In this document: positions 2,593-50,322 of the stretch, piece by piece
How the letters are laid out: each line of letters opens with the position of its first letter
Numbering within the stretch: the first letter of the stretch is position 1
Assembly (NCBI GenBank): GCA_965202585.1
Contig: OZ241832.1
Span: forward strand, 33,480,001 to 33,544,000
Length of the DNA: 64,000 nucleotides
Source: Thalia democratica
Taxonomy: Eukaryota
Direction of reading: 5' to 3'
Position numbers and translations under genes: made by a program
The notes under the pieces: model-generated
Databases searched by the model: none
The model's input: only the letters and a program-made list of their open reading frames with translations
What the model was told of the DNA's origin: nothing

Positions 2593-4383
2593 ATGTCTGG
2601 ACGAGTTTTGAGAAGTCACAAAAGATCAAAACCTGAAGATGATACAGAAACCACAAAACCACCTGCTAAAGTGTTGAAAACTTCAGTGAAAAAGAAAGCT
2701 CCTAAGAATTCAGTCTGTGCTAAAACTACAAAACTTATCAAGCATAAAGGTAAAGAAAACAAGGTTGCTAAGAAAAATGCAGCTGTATCTAAAGATTCAA
2801 CTACAAAAAAAACTAAGCCACAGCAAAAGAACGCAAATAAGGTTTCTAAAACTACCACTCTAAAAGGCAATAAGCCTCCAAAAGTGGATATAACCAATGT
2901 GAGCACTTTAAAAACCGTTACATTTAAAGGAAAAGTACCTGTTGACGATGAATGTGTGGAGTGTAAAAAAGACTATGTTGTTTACAACAAAGAAAACGAT
3001 GTTTACAATGCCATGCTGAATCAAACTAACATTGCCAATAACAACAACAAGTACTTCCTTCTTCAGCTGCTCAAACACAAGGAAAAACCAGTTTTCAAAG
3101 TTTGGTTCAGATGGGGAAGAGTTGGCAGAATTGCTGGTAAAAAGTTGCACGATTGCAGCACTCTCAATGAAGCCATTGAAAAGTTTGAAAAGAAGTTCAG
3201 TGACAAGACGAAAAATTACTGGTGTGACAGACATGATTTTGAACGTTTTCCATGCAAGTATGAGTTGATTCACATGGATTATGGCAAGACTGATGAACCT
3301 GTAAAAAAAGAGGAATCTTCTGAGATAAAAATTCCGGAATCTATTCTTGAAGAGGAGTTGCAGGCGCTGATGAAGTTGATCTTTGATGTGAAAGAGTTCA
3401 ACAATATAGTAAAAGAAATGCAGTTTGACCCAAGAAGATCACCGTTAGGCAAGCTCACGACTGTTCAAATACAGTCAGGCTATGAGATACTGACATTAAT
3501 TGAAAATATACTGAAAAAGAAAGTCAAAGGAAATTTGGTCCATGCTTGCAACCAGTTTTACACAAAAATTCCTCATGACTTTGGTATGAAAGTTCCAACA
3601 GTTATTAGGAACCAGGAGGAAATAAAAGAAAAAATCAATTTGCTGGAAGCCTTGAGTGACATCAAAATAGCAATGAAGATGATTGAAGAGTCAATGGTCA
3701 AAGGAAATCCTCTTGACAACCAGTACAAAAGCCTTCAGTGCCCAATAAGCGTCCTCAAAAAGACCAGCACCGATTACAAACTGATCGAGAGGTACGTCAC
3801 CAACACTCACGGAGCCACGCACACCGGCTACACCCTCAACATTCAGAACATTTTTTCTATTGCCAAAAACAAGGGCGGCTTCAACAAAAACCTTGGCAAC
3901 AGATACCTGCTGTGGCACGGGTCCCGCCTGACAAACTGGTGCGGCATTCTGAAGCAGGGGCTGCGCATTGCTCCCCCGGAAGCCCCCTCAACTGGCTACA
4001 TGTTTGGCAAGGGGGTTTACTTCGCCGACATGGTCTCAAAGTCAGCCAACTACTGCTGCACGAGCAGAAGACAGCCGACCGGCCTGCTCATCTTGTGCGA
4101 AGTTGCTCTTGGTAACCCAAACTGCTTGAAGGCGGCTGATTATGAGGCTGGAAACTTACCAGCTGGCACAGACAGCGTCAAAGGGGTGGGAAAGACCCAG
4201 CCGGACCCCAGTGAAAATGTTACTATGGGAGATGGGGTGATCGTCCCTGTTGGAAAGCCAACCACCACCCCAGACTCGGATGACAGCGCCTTGCTGTATA
4301 ATGAGTACATTGTCTACGACACTGACCAAGTAAGACCCAGGTATCTTGTGCAGCTTGACTTTAATTTTAAAAGTTTGTGGTAG
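2593..4383 (+). CDS. PARP2: Poly(ADP-ribose) polymerase 2-like, 596 aa, single exon
   Basis: Lys-rich N-terminus; PARP2-type segment KVPVDDEC..YNAMLNQTNIANNNNKYFLLQLL; WGR domain (WFRWGRVG); PARP regulatory domain (PLGKL, FYTKIPHDFG); catalytic domain with H-Y-E triad (LWHGS, GVYFAD, YNEYIVY). Confidence 0.95.
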   Translation: MSGRVLRSHKRSKPEDDTETTKPPAKVLKTSVKKKAPKNSVCAKTTKLIKHKGKENKVAKKNAAVSKDSTTKKTKPQQKNANKVSKTTTLKGNKPPKVDITNVSTLKTVTFKGKVPVDDECVECKKDYVVYNKENDVYNAMLNQTNIANNNNKYFLLQLLKHKEKPVFKVWFRWGRVGRIAGKKLHDCSTLNEAIEKFEKKFSDKTKNYWCDRHDFERFPCKYELIHMDYGKTDEPVKKEESSEIKIPESILEEELQALMKLIFDVKEFNNIVKEMQFDPRRSPLGKLTTVQIQSGYEILTLIENILKKKVKGNLVHACNQFYTKIPHDFGMKVPTVIRNQEEIKEKINLLEALSDIKIAMKMIEESMVKGNPLDNQYKSLQCPISVLKKTSTDYKLIERYVTNTHGATHTGYTLNIQNIFSIAKNKGGFNKNLGNRYLLWHGSRLTNWCGILKQGLRIAPPEAPSTGYMFGKGVYFADMVSKSANYCCTSRRQPTGLLILCEVALGNPNCLKAADYEAGNLPAGTDSVKGVGKTQPDPSENVTMGDGVIVPVGKPTTTPDSDDSALLYNEYIVYDTDQVRPRYLVQLDFNFKSLW

Positions 4384-33620: not shown

Positions 33621-34808
33621 GTCAGAATGAGGTTTTTAAAAACTTAAAAAATTACTTTAATCTAATAATCAGTAGAACAGCTAGCCATAAGGTTGACAAT
33701 TTGGTAGTAAAGTTTTTAATTTTATAACATAGGTAAAGAGTTGCATTTCTGAAATGTTTATTTCGTATTTTAAATGTAAATTAGTCACGTGTACAAAATG
33801 AGCCAATCTCGGTAGGTGTTTAATTTTAACTGACGAAAATGACTCTTTTTAATTTACTCAGGGTTTGTTTTTGAAAAAATACTTTTCTGTATGCTCTTTT
33901 TTACTAACTAGATCCGAATCGGCCGGATCTCTGTTAGGATCCGGCCGGAACCGGATCCGAATCTTTTTTTTAAGTCAAGATCCGGCCGGATCCGGATCTT
34001 TTTTCATATCAATTAGACAAAAATGGCAATATCCGGCCGGACCCGGATAGTGAGTCCGGTACATCACTAGTTAAAAATCAGTAACTTGAGAATTTTGTGA
34101 CAAAACTAAACGTTATGAAAGATTCCAAGTGAGCTACTAGTTATATGCGAAGCTAAGGAGTATTTAGTGAAGAAATCAATTTAAGTAAATATTTCTAACT
34201 TTTACCTTCTTAAATAAATGCAATTAGTAAAACATTACACAGATATAAAAGTTCTCAAATTCAGTTATAAAAGGTATATCTTGCTGCCTTATCAGTTCTA
34301 TACATATTTTTTTTCAACTTTTATGGTCAGAAAGTAATTAATTAAAGTTAATTAGTAACATAAGTAACTAGCAGCTATTAATTAATATATAAATATTTTA
34401 TTTACAAAAACTTAAATTATATACAAACTAATAAACTCAAAACTACAAATAAAGGTTAATACATCACAAAAATTTAACAGTTTAGTTAAAGTCCTTATGT
34501 TTATAACGATTAAATTTTATATATAGATAAATTGCTCGATATAACAATTCTGAAATAAACGTTTTCTTCACGCATTAAATTGAATAGTTTTATTTTCATT
34601 TAAATTACAGTAACTTTCTATACTTATTTTTCCGCTAATTAACTTCCTTAGATCACCTACTTTTTAATTCTCGGATGTCATATAATTCCTACCTGATATA
34701 ATTTCTAGCCAGTATTTATTTCGGCCATCATCAACAAAGTTGAGATGTTATATGCCATCGATAATAAATAAAAAACTTTACCACAAGATCAACAGCATCC
34801 GAGACAAT

Positions 34809-34849
34809 CCTACGACCGGTTTCGTCCTTATTAGGACTCATCAGGTAGG
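34809..34849 (-). ncRNA. Minimal type I hammerhead ribozyme (predicted cleavage between 34814 and 34813)
   Basis: Minus strand reads CCUAC-CUGAUGA-GUCCU(AAUA)AGGAC-GAAA-CCGG-UC^GUAGG: complete catalytic core, stem I CCUAC/GUAGG, 5-bp stem II, palindromic stem III. Confidence 0.9.
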
Positions 34850-35039
34850 AATAGTGGCGAGAAACCGCTATTGTGATTTTAAACAAGCGGGCTTAAGTAC
34901 AAAGTACTGAAGCGACCTTTTGTGGGTAAAGTTGAAAAAATGACACAGCTAAATCATTCACAGCCCAACGTCTCAGACATTGTCAGCTTGTTGAGAGATT
35001 ATAGTCTGCGCTCGTTTGATCAGTTTTAGCCATACTATT

Positions 35040-35080
35040 CCTGCCTGATGAGTCCTAATAAGGACGAAACCGGTCGTAGG
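35040..35080 (+). ncRNA. Minimal type I hammerhead ribozyme (predicted cleavage after 35075)
   Basis: CCUGC-CUGAUGA-GUCCU(AAUA)AGGAC-GAAA-CCGG-UC^GUAGG; stem I is kept with one G.U wobble. Confidence 0.9.
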
Positions 35081-35456
35081 ATTGTCTCGGATGCTGTTGA
35101 TCTTGCGGTAAAGTTCATTATTTATTATCGATGGCATATAACATCTCAACTTTGTTGATGATGGCCGAAATAAATACTGACTTCATATACAAAGATTAAG
35201 AGGTAAGTAATAATTAATTTAATTTGCTTGAGTTTTCTTTTAGCTCAACGTCTGTAAAGTGAACAAAAATACTACTGGGATCTAATATATTAGTTTTAAT
35301 TCTTTTAAAGTCAATGGAAAGTTTTGAAGAATGAAGTTAAAGTATTTTTAAAACTTTTTATGCCTCGTTGTGTAAAAATATTTGAAAGAATATGGATAAT
35401 AATCGCAATGAAATAGTTAGTAAACATGTAGTATGTTAATGTATATGGGATAGGTA

Positions 35457-35710
35457 TTTTGAATTTTTTAGGTATTTTTCGGTCGAGCTAAATTTTGAAC
35501 TTTTTTAGGTCATTTTTAAGTATAAGCTAGTTTTTGAACTTTTTAAGGTCATTTTCAAATAAAAGCTGTTTTTTGAACTTTTTAGGTCATTTTTAAGTAA
35601 AAGCTGTTTTTTGAACTTTTTTAGGTCATTTTTAAGTATAAGCTGTTTTTGAACTTTTTAGGTCATTTTTAAGTATAATCTGTTTTTTGAACTTTTTTAG
35701 GTCACTTTTC
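35457..35710. repeat. ~37-bp minisatellite, about 7 copies
   Basis: Unit approximately TTTTGAACTTTTTAGGTCATTTTTAAGTATAAGCTG, with isolated copies near 36210, 36430 and 37430. Confidence 0.9.
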
Positions 35711-37984
35711 TAAATAATCTTTATTGAGTTGAATCAAAGGTCCATATTTTTTACTGAAAAAAGTTATAACTTATGAATTTCATAACAAGTCTGAATATTC
35801 CTAAAGATATTTACGCAGTATTAAATATTTATTGAACGTCGAAAGTAAAACCGCTCAAAAAGTTTGGTCTAAGGACCTGTAGTAATCAAGAACATTTAAG
35901 TAATTGAGTCATACTCCGTGGATACAGTTTACTATCTTGTTCAGGGCAAGTGTGCCAAGACTTTTTAAATTTAATATTTTTTTAGTCAAACAGCTAAAAT
36001 ATACTGTATAAAATTAGATTTTTATAAATAATAAATCAACAACTATAGAAAAAAATTAATAACATAACTTAGTTGTTCAATATAAAGGTTTCTTAAAAGT
36101 TTTCATACGTTTTGACTCCTTAAAATATATCAACATTAATTTTTAACCTTTTTCTAAACTCCTTTTTATGCAAAATACTTTTAAGAAGAATGCAATTAGT
36201 ATTAATTATTTTTGAACTATTAGGGTCATTTCTAACACTTCTGTTATTAAGAAAATAAATTGTTGATGAAACAACTTTTTTTCGGACCATTGTTTTCAAG
36301 ATTAGGTATTTTTTGAAGTTGTTTTATCTTTTGATTACTTTTAGTTTCTCAAAAACGATTTCCAACACTTTCATAAACTTATATCATATAGAAGTTACCT
36401 TAGAAAAGCATGGTATTAGTACTACTTATTTTTGAACTTTTTAGGTCATTTTTAACACGTATGCAAATTAGAGTTCAATCAAAGGTCAGAGCAAGGATTT
36501 TCTGAGTCAGCAGAAATGTAGTCTAGCTGTTTCCTTATAAATCTAGTCATTCCTAAAAATACCTACGTAGTGTATGGACCTTTTGATTAATTTTTTTAAT
36601 TTTAGTTTGTTTTTTTAAATTAAGAGAAACTAGTTGATTAATTAACGATATGAATATTTTTTTGTTTATTTTAGAATTTTTTTAATAGGTATAGTTTCAG
36701 TTATTTGCAATATGTATTGTTAAAGAAATATCAATATTATAAAGAACCTTTAGGTAATGTATACCATAGTTAAATAAATATTTTTATGACTAAAAGTTTT
36801 ATGCCAAAGACTGATATTAAATGTTTAAATGATTTGAAATATTTAGCTGAGATTTTTTGAAAATATATTTTGAATTACAATTCTACGGCACCCTAACCTT
36901 AAACTTTCAAATATTATTTCTCAAATCAGTATCATAAGAGTTAATTTAACAGCTATAACAAGTAAGGTTTTCTTTTAATGCATGCAAAAAATTAATTTCG
37001 GTATTTTAATTTTAAGTATTATCTGGTATACTTTTCTATCTAAATAAAAATAGTTGTGAGATAAAGTGTTTTAAAGTTTTTTCACTAAAATTACACTTTT
37101 AAAATTACACTAGATATACACTTTTAAATAGGATAAGTAGTAATTTAAAAATTTTCTATTTAAATTGCTTAAGCTACAAACAGCAAAGTTATGAAAGTTC
37201 TTCTTTTATACCAAGTCCATTAGTTTTTGAAGAAAACTCTAGGAATGCCATTTTAGTAAAACGTAGGAGTCAAAATTTAACAGTATTACATTTTATATTA
37301 AAATTTAAAAAATTTAAGTTTAAAAAAAGAGTTCAGTTATTATCAAGTTCAAAACTAACTTAAATCTGTTTCAAGTAAAAAAAAGTCAAGGAATTTCTCA
37401 TAGCTAATAAAAATAGCTTACTTTGCATTTTTTTGAACTTTTTCCGGTCATTTTTAATATGTAAGCTTAAAAAATGCTGACTTGACACTACTAAGGATTT
37501 TTTTTTCCTTAGTGTGATTTCGTTTGTCATACAAATTGAGTCTAGTTAACAAGTAACAGTCTTTTTACTTACTTGCTTATTAAAAATGATAAATAATTTT
37601 ACCACAAACTACATAGTTACGATACCATTTAAGTTTAGAAATTGAAATACTATAGATCTTCAACAAAACGGTAGTTTTAATATTCTATATTTAATAATTC
37701 TTTAGGTTCGTATATATTTCTAAATATTTTAAAACACATTCTGTCGGTACCCTCTTAAAAGTTAAAGCATAGCTTACCCGAAGAAAATTTCTTAAAAATC
37801 CTAAAAACATTTTCAGATATTTAAGTTTTTTCTTATATTTAAAAAAATTAAATCACAAAAAATGTAATCTAATTTTGTATTTTAAATGAATTTCAAATTT
37901 GGATTGATAACAATTACTATATCATTTTTTTTTTATAGAAAAATCTACAAAACTCGATAGATTAATTTTGTTACATTAGATACA

Positions 37985-39458
37985 ATGCAAAGCAACAACA
38001 CAAACAACCAAAACTTCACGGGTCAACTGAACAGGACTTACCCCCAGAAAAGAGCAGCCGACTTTCAATACGACAACAGAACTGTCAGGTCCGACCCATC
38101 TTACATGCAGCAAACTGCATACGGTAACCAGAACCAACAGTACAAACAGCAAGTTCACATGAACCCTTACGACCCGAACGACAGTCTGGTCAGCAGCAAC
38201 ACAACTGGTTACTATGACAACGACCCTTCTAATCCCGATTACCAGCAGCAAAGTCCTTATCCTGCGAGCTACGATCTTGTCAGCACGAATATGAACGGAT
38301 CTTATCAGCAGCGCCACCAAACGGTTAGTAGTAATCCAGCCAACAGTACAATGCAAAACAGTGTGGTGCAGTCTAGCGGCAGTTTTATTGCAGAAGACAG
38401 TAAAGCAAGTATCTACTCACAAGGTGGTGCTAATTCTGGTGGAATGAGCTTACCACCGCTCCATTCTACTCCGAATAGCCAAAGTTACTATGGAAACGTG
38501 TCCATCCAAAACACACATTCTCAATACCCGATAAACAAGAAGCAACAAAAAATGTTAGGAGGTCATTTATTTAACAGTCCAGTCATAACAGATGACGAAC
38601 TGTTGAAGTTGAGTACTCGTGAGCTCAATACCAAACTGCAATTCTATAGGTAAATTACATGTTGTAAAATTCTTTTATAACGACGAGTTTTAAGTTTTAT
38701 CTTTGCTTTAGACTAGCTATAACTAAGTTATAAATCAAAAATTGTAGTTAAAAAAGAAATCAGTTAGTACGTTTAAGTACAGTTCCTCTTTCTTCTTTAT
38801 GAAAAATGATTGACAATCAAAAAGGAATAGGTGCCATTAAGTAGTAAAGTAAACATACGTACATAATTTTTTTTTGGTAGAATGTTTTTAAATTTATTAA
38901 CAGCATATTAAACAGTTTTTGTTAGAACAGTATTCGTAAGCATAAAAAAGTACATGAAATTTATTAAAATATTTCTTAATATTTTTGTTTCTTCTTTTGA
39001 TTTTAGGTTTTACAGTATATATTAAAAGTACTAAAACAAGTTATGTAAACTATATTTAAAAAACATGTATAACAAATAAATCAAAATAACAAATCGTGTA
39101 TGTAAAATTGGTTACGAGTTACTTATAACAAATTTTCACAAACCACCGCTAATTTTTAGTGATGAAGAGAAAGATATGTACAAATCAAAACGAAGAACAC
39201 TAAAGAACCGAGAGTATGCGAAAACTTCACGAAATAAATTCACAACCGAACTAGAGGAAACTAAAAACAAGGTAGGTTCCACTTTGTGTAAGTCAAGAAC
39301 GTGTTAACTAAAATTTAATTTTTAAAATTTATTAGGCAAAAGAATTAAAGAATGAGAGAGACACTTTGGTGAGGATATTAAAAGACTTAAAACAGAAGGG
39401 AGTTAGTTTTGATGCCTACAAAAAAGAAGCACCTTTTTTAGATGAACTACTTCAATAA
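37985..39458 (+). CDS. Maf-like bZIP transcription factor, 299 aa; exons 37985-38649, 39160-39271, 39336-39458
   Basis: Q/N/S/Y-rich N-terminus, then DDELLKLSTRELN (Maf extended homology region), SDEEKDMYKSKRRTLKNREYAKTSR (Maf-type basic region) and a short leucine zipper. Splice phases are consistent. Confidence 0.85.
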
Positions 39459-47900: not shown

Positions 47901-50322
47901 AAATCTCATAAATTGATCTTATTTTGAAATTTTACTTTTACTTTTAAATTCACTATCAGACACTTTTTACCACTGAACAGAAATCAAGGTAGTTTTTGAG
48001 ATATTAGGTATAAAAGTTGATGAGTTCAATATTTTTCTTATAAAAGGTATAAACTAAAGAGACAAAAAGTTAACTTTCACTAAAAATCTGTGTTGTCTTT
48101 AAATTTTATACCAATCTTAGTCAAAGTTTTACAGCTGTGAAATTACTAATATTTAGATTTTTCACCCGAAAATTAATTGTTTTTTAATGTTTTAAAATTA
48201 CAACTTTTTATTTCTTTTCAACAATAAAAGTAACTTATCTCGAATATTTGTTGTCAAACTCAAAATGTATGTAAATTGGTTTTTATTTCATTTTTAAATT
48301 TTCAATAAAGTTCACTACAAAAAAATTGCTTTTTATAATATGAATCCTAAAACTTTAAAAAAGGACTATCTATTTTTAAACGTTAATGAAGATAACATAA
48401 ACTGAAAAATACTAAAAAAAAATAATTTATATTATATATTTATATATACTATAAAAATATACAATTTGTATATACTGTACTTTAGTTTACTCTTAGTTTA
48501 TTTTAGCTTCATTAACTAATATATGATTTAGATATTAGTTACAAACCAATTTATTTAATTTTTGTTGTTTTATCCCACAATATTATAAAACTTTTGTGTA
48601 TATGATTTACAATATCTTCAACTTGTTTATATGTTTTTTCAGGTTTAATTTACAACTGAAAATCTCTAGAGAACTTAAAGTGAAAATTGTTTTGTACTTA
48701 GAACTTGTTAAATAAAATGTTAAATTTAAGTAGTCAATTTGTAGGCATTAAAAAAACATAAAAATAAACTGCTTAAAAATGTATAAAATTTTTTTTTTAT
48801 TTCTCTTGAAATACAACAATATTTTTTTTTAGTTATGCGAAAAACATTTCTTAAAAGTTTGTGCTCATACATAGGTATAAAAAACATAGAAGAAGATAAA
48901 TTTTAGTTAAAAAAAAACTATTTTAAAGTTGACCTAAACAAGTTCCAAACTCTTACATCAAAAAATTTTTACAAAACTGAATGTACCTCAAAATGTATAT
49001 AGGTTTTAAATATTCTAATTTGATTATAAAAGAAATTTTATTAAAAAAATCTTTGACATCCTTATGGTCTTAACTCGTACGACTTAGAAAACATACTTTC
49101 TTTTCTCATCTATAAAAAGTAGCAAAAATTGTTCCACACTCCAAATATAACCTTTTGTTTTATTGTTGTAACTGTAACACAGTAAAATAAGTGTTTTAAT
49201 AATTAACTTTTGTTAACTGCACAGAAACGACACCTCCCCCATCGGCGTGATTGTTCTTGAAAACTGTTCGGTTCAACTGGCGGAAGGAGGCGACTCGCCG
49301 TTCACGTTTTCCATTCAGTTCAACGGTCAGTCCACCAGAACTTACAAGCTGACTGCCGACGATGATGTTTCCTGCAACTCGTGGATGAAAGCCCTACTCC
49401 ACAGCAGTTACATGTTTGTGTAATTTGTATTTGTTTCTTTTTAAGTGTTTGTAATTACTTACCTGCAAATATAAATGTTTTTAAACTTTCTTATAATATT
49501 ATATAATATTATATTCTATAATATTATATTCAAAAGAACATTTAGATTATTATTACTATTTTTTAGTTAGGGTTGATCACGCCAATTCGATCATCAGACC
49601 ACAAGTTTCGGTAGACTGAGACCGGTTTCGTCCTTTTTAAACTTTGTTAAACTTGAGCTTGCCTCACGGCAAACGATAGTTCAGGCTTCTGCTCTGCTGA
49701 CTTTCGCCGATGTTTTTTGTTGAATTTTTTAGTTATTTAGATTTTGTTTGTATCTAAGCTCACCAATTTTGGTCATACTTTGCCAACTTAGTTGTTTTTA
49801 AGTAGCTTTTAAGTTTTTCAGAACCTTAAATGATTGCTTTACTTTGATTATTATTGTTATCAAGTTGTAAATATCATATGGTACTCAATTATATAGAAAT
49901 GTATTGTTGTTTAATATTAAAAAACCTTGCTCAATTATTAAATTCAAACAATCAGGTACATGCAGATTCTAGTGAACGAGATGCAACGTGAAGTTGACAA
50001 AACTGACAGCAAAGAAGACAGCGAGAAAATAAATTCCCCGCCGAGGCACCTCGACGTGCTGAACTCCATCGACGTGGTCGACGGTCAGAAAAACAACCTT
50101 TTCGTTTCGAACGCGTCCAAGTCCAAGTCGTCCATTCTCCGCAAGATTTCGCCCAAGTTTGGCAGGAAGGCTCACGCGCCTCGCAAAAGTTCAGTCAGGC
50201 TTTCCGACTCGATGAATTTGCGGCAGGACTTTAAGACTTTGCATTTGAAGTACAGGAACGAGATGTTCGGAGCGGCTCGAACTGACGCGAAACAAAAAGA
50301 AACGGAGATTGAACTTATTTGA
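44972..50322 (+). CDS. PHETA1: Sesquipedalian / PHETA (FAM109)-like PH-domain endocytic adaptor, 237 aa; exons 44972-45129, 49225-49413, 49956-50322
   Basis: DKEGWLSKKGELNTSYQKRWCILKGNLLFYFE, PIGVIVLENCSVQL, TRTYKLTADD, WMKALLHSSY.YMQILV.EMQRE match the N-terminal PH domain and following helix of this family. Phases are consistent. Confidence 0.85.
45566..46536. mobile_element. Non-autonomous Transib-like element, copy 2, in PHETA intron 1
   Basis: TATTA|CACAGTGGG ... CCCACTGTG|TATTA, a perfect 5-bp TSD. Confidence 0.88.
46633..47326. mobile_element. Kolobok-like non-autonomous element, copy 2
   Basis: TTAA|GGCCATAGGGGG ... CCCCCCCTATGGCC|TTAA; reverse-orientation homolog of 26785-27500. 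Confidence 0.8.
49620..49635 (-). other. 3' half of the hammerhead motif (truncated copy) in PHETA intron 2
   Basis: Minus strand AAGGACGAAACCGGTC is an exact 16-nt match to the ribozymes at 34809-34849 and 35040-35080; the 5' half is missing. Confidence 0.55.

Follow-up and report, generated by a model that had tools for sequence, protein, structure and literature searches.

Does a pair of hammerhead ribozymes set head to head in an inverted repeat constitute a regulatory device, or is it the trace left by a mobile element at insertion? The question is raised by a 476-nt element in the genome of Thalia democratica, located within a 64,000-nt window (GenBank assembly GCA_965202585.1, contig OZ241832.1, positions 33,480,001 to 33,544,000 of the forward strand); all coordinates below count from the first base of that window. 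A reading made earlier from the sequence alone (the original prediction) described two minimal type I hammerheads in a young or maintained unit devoid of open reading frames (ORFs) and proposed an orientation-dependent self-cleavage switch. The analysis presented here identifies the locus as one ordinary copy of a very abundant, non-autonomous hammerhead retrozyme, a known kind of element. Its layout is very probably the product of a single retrotransposition, by which a small non-coding hammerhead repeat of the animal "non-LTR retrozyme" kind (LTR, long terminal repeat), with a period of ~321 nt, was inserted in a head-to-head arrangement that typifies Penelope-like elements (PLEs).

Two Type I Hammerheads Face Outward from an Inverted Repeat

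A repeat search delimited inverted-repeat arms at 34707–34855 and 35034–35182, each 149 nt long, 97% complementary and with 178 nt between them; arms and spacer together make up the 476 nt of the element. Position-by-position comparison of 34710–34855 with 35034–35179 revealed mismatches at 4 of 146 positions (34772/35117, 34773/35116, 34783/35106, and 34846/35043), an arm divergence of 2.7%, and a further mismatch lies at the outer edge beyond this stretch (34709/35180). The arm identity of 141/145 and the 180-nt spacer given in the original prediction were essentially right. The computed fold of the full element is a near-perfect hairpin of ~146 bp (−314 kcal/mol, z = −35), as expected of any inverted repeat, and agrees with the read-through duplex that had been predicted.

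Within the arms lies a 31-nt core, running from CTGATGA to GAAACCGGTC, which occurs exactly twice in the 64 kb, at 34814–34844 on the minus strand and at 35045–35075 on the plus strand, and was absent from 100 dinucleotide-preserving shuffles of the window. The core is identical in both copies, and the ribozymes face outward. An E-value scan of 34600–35300 with the Rfam models, a check of the kind named in the original prediction, found both copies: Hammerhead_HH9 (RF02275) matched each over its full length, one with a score of 37.2 bits (E = 9.5e-08) and the other with 30.1 bits (E = 1.8e-05). The sole gap in the RF02275 alignment falls at the 5-nt stem III loop of the model, and because this loop is missing, neither score reaches the gathering score of 52; for that reason, an Rfam scan of the whole window at gathering thresholds returned no match. 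A sub-threshold score is expected of dimer-type hammerhead variants. The core search and the Rfam alignment together bear out the claim of two hammerhead cores on opposite strands, pointing away from each other.

Both copies contain the complete type I core (CUGAUGA ... GAAA ... UH, with the G10.1-C11.1 pair and the C17 cleavage site; Rfam clan CL00010), surrounded by three helices of which helix I is open, the arrangement that defines type I. Helix I has 6 bp (UCCUGC/GUAGGA in the right copy and UCCUAC/GUAGGA in the left copy), and helix II has 5 bp with the loop AAUA, the G10.1-C11.1 pair, and no bulged base. The assignment to type I made originally is upheld by these features, and the qualifier "minimal" is only partly apt, given that a helix I of 6 bp and an unbulged helix II of 5 bp correspond to the classical metazoan layout. 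In the monomer, helix III is limited to 2 bp (A-U and C-G) with a 2-nt loop, all inside the palindrome ACCGGU. The predicted cleavage sites, between 34814 and 34813 on the minus strand and between 35075 and 35076 on the plus strand, are 261 nt apart.

When folded as monomers, neither copy assumes a hammerhead structure, and their energies do not stand out (z about −0.9); a misfolded monomer is expected of a dimer-type ribozyme and is not counter-evidence. RNAcofold of the two copies, by comparison, yielded two complete hammerheads joined by a 6-bp intermolecular stem III (ACCGGU/ACCGGU), with an energy of −34.5 kcal/mol for the dimer versus 2 × −15.2 kcal/mol for the monomers. On these folds, the ribozyme is predicted to need a dimer partner, recruited through the palindromic ACCGGU, as had been proposed from the palindromic stem III. 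In published in vitro assays, cleavage by single motifs of the minimal hammerhead ribozyme (min-HHR) was undetectable, and the activity of dimeric constructs was low (PMC4209133). Each strand at the locus offers one sense copy of the ribozyme and one antisense copy.

An identical 31-nt core is also present in one of the JGI metagenome contigs, the unrelated, AT-rich Ga0164294_10174981 (positions 194–224). Stem I of that copy is unpaired, its flanks are unrelated, and downstream of it there is a reading frame that looks transposase-like; the copy is possibly a relic carried by a different organism. With its unpaired stem I and unrelated flanks, the contig was ruled out as a source of information on the family. 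The exact 31-nt core had no match in IMG/VR.

The Family Unit Is Direct and Present in Thousands of Copies

Contigs of four public runs were aligned to 34300–35440; X1 and X3 are DNA-type data sets, and X22 is a metatranscriptome. The runs are stored as contigs, without strand or end information. In X1 and X3, the depth of the flanks was about 58–105 (from 57.6), with a few bins up to about 550, whereas the bins between 34690 and 35196, those of the spacer among them, all had a summed depth of 1.4–9.4 × 10^5. Across the spacer itself, summed depth was 2.3–5.7 × 10^5 throughout. The flanks are single-copy and the family comprises thousands of copies, summed contig depth being unequal to copy number and placing the family in the thousands only.

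The run contigs also define the unit of the family. At the boundary 34709/34710, 77–78 contigs per run in X1 and X3 run on into differing AT-rich sequence. The best-supported joint leads from 35032 to 35176 on the opposite strand, with a summed depth of about 5000 in X1 and again in X3; because the arms mirror each other, it is equivalent to a joint from 35032 to 34713 (about 34712). The consensus of the loose ends past 35032, in which 15 contigs read GTATTTATTTCGGCC..., matches the outer end of the left arm. In the family, the right end of the spacer is thus joined head to tail to the outer end of the left arm, and the unit therefore consists of left arm plus spacer. This unit is direct and tandem-capable, has a period of about 321 nt, and has its sense on the minus strand. 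The copy at the locus measures 327 nt (149 + 178), with about 5–6 nt, TGGCT(A), present at both ends, and has a GC content of 40%. In circular form, delimited by the cleavage sites, the unit is predicted to reach −85.4 kcal/mol with 71% of its bases paired (z = −3.4 versus 200 dinucleotide shuffles).

The longest ORF touching the element encodes 58 aa, in keeping with its earlier description as ORF-less. Among ORFs of at least 120 aa in the 64-kb window, Pfam finds PARP/WGR and an enkurin-like domain and detects no reverse transcriptase (RT) and no GIY-YIG domain; the remaining ORFs of that size are unassigned. With no RT/GIY-YIG ORF in the element or the window, the element is not an autonomous PLE.

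Inverted Copies Recur at Variable Breakpoints across the Family

Against this family unit, the locus resolves into one full unit, running from 35033 down to 34707, and an inverted, 5′-truncated copy of the unit's last 149 nt. Both arms run 5–6 nt beyond the tandem junction (left TGGCTA, right TGaCT), and since they stop at the same point, both outer ends represent the 3′ end of the element. Two minority states of the family are common to both arms, one at 34750/35139 (the window base accounts for about 10–27% of depth) and the other at 34769/35120 (about 10%), and no target DNA separates the two abutting halves. Opposite-strand joints were found elsewhere in the family as well, the run contigs placing them at 34838/34897, 34913/34945, 34934/35033, 34945/34991, and 34949/35041. 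The spread of these joints over many positions indicates that inversion is recurrent, that its breakpoint is variable, and that it is a regular scar of insertions in this family. Collectively, the shared minority variants, the common end point of the arms, the abutting halves, and the recurrent opposite-strand joints point to one source and one event.

Because the family unit is direct and the opposite-strand joints fall at varying positions, the inverted repeat is best described as a by-product of insertion. The locus and its relatives combine a head-to-head, inverted, 5′-truncated copy at the 5′ end with breakpoints that differ among copies, a combination described for PLE insertions (PMC8557442, PMC3846280). 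Contigs of both X1 and X3 cross both outer junctions, and the head-to-head layout is therefore no artefact of assembly. No joint skipping about 34707–35182, which would represent an empty-site allele, was present among the joints listed.

The Element Resembles Retrozymes in Its Unit and PLEs in Its Insertion

The properties of the unit are those of the metazoan non-LTR retrozymes described by Cervera and de la Pena in 2020 (PMC7229834). The unit is non-coding and about 321–327 nt long here, within the published range of about 170–400 nt; it carries one type I hammerhead, its family copies are joined head to tail and number in the thousands, and its GC content is low. The published RNAs are "highly self-paired", a description matched by the 71% pairing predicted for the circular unit. 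In contrast to those retrozymes, the locus holds one unit plus an inverted partial copy and no tandem array, and its circular RNA form and self-cleavage are predicted. Tunicates are not mentioned in that report (no occurrence of "tunicate" or "Ciona").

The arrangement of the insertion has its closest counterpart in PLE insertions with inverted pseudo-long terminal repeats (Arkhipova et al. 2013, PMC3846280; Craig et al. 2021, PMC8557442), which are likewise head-to-head, with an inverted, 5′-truncated copy at the 5′ end and 3′ ends facing outward on both sides. A hammerhead lies in the repeated part in both cases, and a short tail and a short target-site duplication (TSD) are possible features of the present locus, PLE-type insertions being expected to show a short TSD, a tail of 30–40 bp, or both. 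The inverted arrangement met most often among PLE insertions is the head-to-head one, and their TSDs, where present, measure 8–10 bp (PMC3846280); an inverted 5′-truncated copy next to the 5′ end, with optional tails and short or absent TSDs, is standard (PMC8557442 section 6; PMC3846280). Unlike PLEs, the element has no RT/GIY-YIG ORF within the 64-kb window and is only 476 bp long, and it is likened to them by architecture. By this analogy, its insertion architecture supports a tie to the Penelope-like world.

The ribozymes can also be compared with the dual min-HHRs of PLEs, which were reported in 2014 to lie on opposite strands about 100–700 bp apart (Cervera and de la Pena 2014, PMC4209133). 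The opposite orientation and the 261 nt between cleavage sites are in line with that report, as is the palindromic stem III, which implies a dimer. The PLE min-HHR differs in having a helix II of 7–8 bp with a bulged base, whereas helix II here has 5 unbulged bp and helix I has 6 bp, so that the ribozyme is closer to the classical metazoan type I (PMC4209133) and Rfam HH9 layout than to the PLE min-HHR.

Arm Differences and Haplotypes Indicate an Insertion That Is Not Very Recent

The one arm difference that falls in a ribozyme stem, 34846/35043, gives CCUAC/GUAGG (A-U) on the left and CCUGC/GUAGG (G.U) on the right. Stem I is kept in both, as originally stated, but the direction of change proposed at that time, from A-U to G.U, is reversed by the family data: 92% of the family depth at 34846 is in the G.U (right-arm) state, which makes G.U ancestral and the A-U pair of the left arm derived. 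Consensus strings of the related family carry GCGG and GTTCATT, like the right arm, which suggests a left-arm change at the other three differing positions too. In the spacer, 4 of 178 positions (34856, 34878, 34918, and 34994) differ from the near-unanimous family state.

In X3 the insertion sits on a haplotype with 25 differences in 418 positions of its left flank (about 6%), and the insertion is therefore not very recent or private. The element can be called young, as the original prediction had it, only in a relative sense (2.7% between arms, 4/178 in the spacer, and presence on the haplotypes of two samples); the alternative offered with it, that the unit is maintained, is not supported, the breakpoints being variable and the arms diverging. 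At 34309–34495 and in the flanks, X1 has two haplotypes, with contig depths of 43.6 and 39.7 and with 16 differences and 1 gap in 187 nt, and X3 has only the divergent one. Allelic divergence in non-coding DNA is very high here, about 6–9%.

Evidence against a Single Insertion and Alternative Explanations

Several observations weigh against the insertion of a retrozyme in one PLE-like event. No abutting TSD of at least 8 nt was found, and the ends of the element show no clean TSD; a 7-mer, TCATATA, is present at 34678–34684 and 35183–35189, but to serve as a TSD it requires a 22-nt "tail" on the left. The inner inversion junction, between 35033 and 35034, was spanned by none of the contigs listed. 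All four arm differences appear to be left-arm changes and none is private to the right arm among the variants listed, which is mildly odd for one event. The metatranscriptome X22 contains contigs of the element, including one over the tandem junction, at a summed depth of about 320–2700 over the element and 0 over the flanks, and DNA carry-over from thousands of genomic copies would look alike.

The candidate tail begins with a 13-mer, ATTCCTACCTGAT, that exactly matches the 5′ start of the left-arm ribozyme, including the left arm's private A. Matches to the element of at least 13 nt occur at nine places in the other 63.5 kb, and the empirical chance of one this near an end is ~0.01. Local alignment to a dimer of the unit revealed no older degenerate copy in the flanks above the level of shuffled sequence, the 13-mer scoring 26 versus a maximum of 34 in shuffled 210-nt flanks. 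The 13-mer may be due to chance or may be a template-switch product.

Four other explanations were considered. The locus could be a maintained functional module, that is, a selected inverted repeat in which the read-through duplex hides the ribozyme and feeds small RNAs while RNAs initiated in the spacer self-cleave. Such a module would accommodate the near-perfect 146-bp hairpin (z = −35), the two intact cores with a stem I change that keeps pairing, and an insertion common to two samples on diverged haplotypes. It is nevertheless very unlikely: with a direct family unit and inverted junctions at many positions, the hairpin is not a conserved feature; by prediction, one sense ribozyme on its own, its stem III being only 2 bp long, does not take the hammerhead fold, the published single-motif PLE min-HHR was without detectable cleavage (PMC4209133), and the arms are diverging. 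Separate insertions of two family copies, beside or into each other in opposite orientation, are equally hard to credit. A family of thousands of copies offers ample material for such an encounter, and halves of different age could account for four differences that all look left-arm, but the halves abut without target DNA, share the minority variants at 34750/35139 and 34769/35120, and form a head-to-head joint of a kind that recurs across the family and is the norm for published PLEs (PMC3846280).

A lower probability still is assigned to a miniature inverted-repeat transposable element (MITE) or a foldback-type DNA transposon, with hammerheads lying by chance in its terminal inverted repeats (TIRs). 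The family shows tandem joints, a single defined 3′ end, and variable 5′ and inversion points, which is the behavior of a retroelement; there is no convincing abutting TSD, and the spacer is as repetitive as the arms. These findings outweigh the superficial fit of 149-bp TIRs, a total length of 476 bp, the lack of ORFs, and the AT-rich surroundings. Copies of a MITE would all share both TIRs and a fixed TSD, and this candidate was rejected on finding family units that are direct or tandem with inversion points that vary. The least probable explanation, and an exceedingly improbable one, is that the second arm arose after insertion by palindromic duplication, through a replication template switch, or is an artefact of assembly. 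Inverted repeats are known to trouble assemblies (PMC8557442), yet both outer junctions, with the 3′ end of the element facing the flank, are found in contigs of two samples, and the arms differ at 4 positions.

Proposed Mechanism and Significance

For a single retrotransposition in PLE-typical form, published PLE insertions suggest the likely route: reverse transcription would have been primed at both sides of a staggered break made by a GIY-YIG endonuclease, or the inverted copy would have arisen by a template jump or by self-priming. RT and endonuclease would presumably be supplied in trans by autonomous PLEs. "Twin priming" of L1, by which both strands of one staggered break prime reverse transcription and an inverted segment results, is an analogy only, having been worked out for a different class of retroelement with an APE-type (apurinic/apyrimidinic) endonuclease.

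In the life cycle of the family, tandem or multimeric transcripts are the probable setting in which the hammerhead acts; there, two copies would pair by ACCGGU into a stable stem III. By the scheme published for such elements, cleavage of the dimer would excise a unit-length RNA, which tRNA ligase could circularize (PMC7229834, PMC4209133). A read-through transcript of the locus itself would fold into the ~146-bp hairpin with the ribozyme masked, as a side effect of the scar and not as a device. The orientation-dependent self-cleavage switch of the original prediction found no support, given the direct family unit and the varying inversion points; with one sense ribozyme per strand, predicted to need a partner, the switch stays conjecture. 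With breakpoints that differ from copy to copy and arms that diverge, there is no sign of selection on the hairpin. It is conceivable, though very unlikely, that head-to-head copies are transcribed through and that the resulting ~146-bp hairpins are diced to small RNAs that silence in trans both the whole retrozyme family and its PLE helpers sharing the core; if true, the insertion scar would double as a built-in brake on the family.

The main value of these results is for annotation, in that the locus should be masked as a retrozyme or PLE-type repeat and not treated as a candidate regulatory RNA. The locus also provides a junction-resolved example in which a small hammerhead retrozyme appears with the same head-to-head scar as PLEs. 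A published argument holds that retrozymes are derived from PLEs and non-autonomous, and the locus fits this proposal for those of animals (bioRxiv 10.64898/2026.07.22.740005) and extends the picture of retrozymes with a PLE-type scar to an AT-rich marine animal genome.

Features of the Locus and Its Surroundings

The features assigned at the locus are collected in Table 1.

Table 1. Coordinates of the element, its parts, and candidate insertion features in the window
Feature	Position	Strand	Basis or remarks
Full family unit (left arm + spacer)	34707..35033	-	Run-contig joints, loose ends, boundary 34709/34710
Spacer, the 5′ 178 nt of the unit and not unique DNA	34856..35033	-	Summed depth versus flanks
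Inverted, 5′-truncated partial copy: last 149 nt of the unit, 3′ end outward on the right	35034..35182	+	Arm comparison
Hammerhead of the full unit	34808..34850	-	Stem I UCCUAC/GUAGGA; core 34844 to 34814; predicted cleavage after C 34814
Hammerhead of the inverted partial copy	35039..35081	+	Stem I UCCUGC/GUAGGA (G.U); core 35045-35075; predicted cleavage 35075/35076
Candidate 7-bp TSD TCATATA, left copy	34678..34684	.	Right copy 35183-35189; uncertain in AT-rich DNA
Candidate PLE-type tail, 22 nt	34685..34706	.	Opens with the 13-mer ATTCCTACCTGAT; uncertain

The window is AT-rich eukaryotic DNA, with 21–36% GC in 2-kb bins, and contains host genes, for example the PARP ORF at 2593–4383. A minisatellite at 35454–35721, 270 nt to the right of the element, comprises at least 7 copies of a 37–39-nt AT-rich unit (TTTTTGAACTTTTTTAGGTCATTTTTAAGTATAAGCTG-like). 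The element lies about 2.8 kb upstream of a Q/N-rich ORF (37985–38653, plus strand) that has no match in Pfam and ends in the motif DDELLKLSTRELNTKL, which resembles the extended homology region of bZIP factors of the Maf/NF-E2 type.

Another repeat family with a hammerhead is represented at 49560–49650 on the minus strand by a 5′-truncated copy whose break lies within the ribozyme: all that is left is AAAGGACGAAACCGGTC, after which comes TCAGTCTACCGAAAC..., and CUGAUGA is missing. The post-cleavage sequence of this copy was also seen in the run data among the loose ends after 35075, which indicates that several families of this genome share one ribozyme core (35041–35075).

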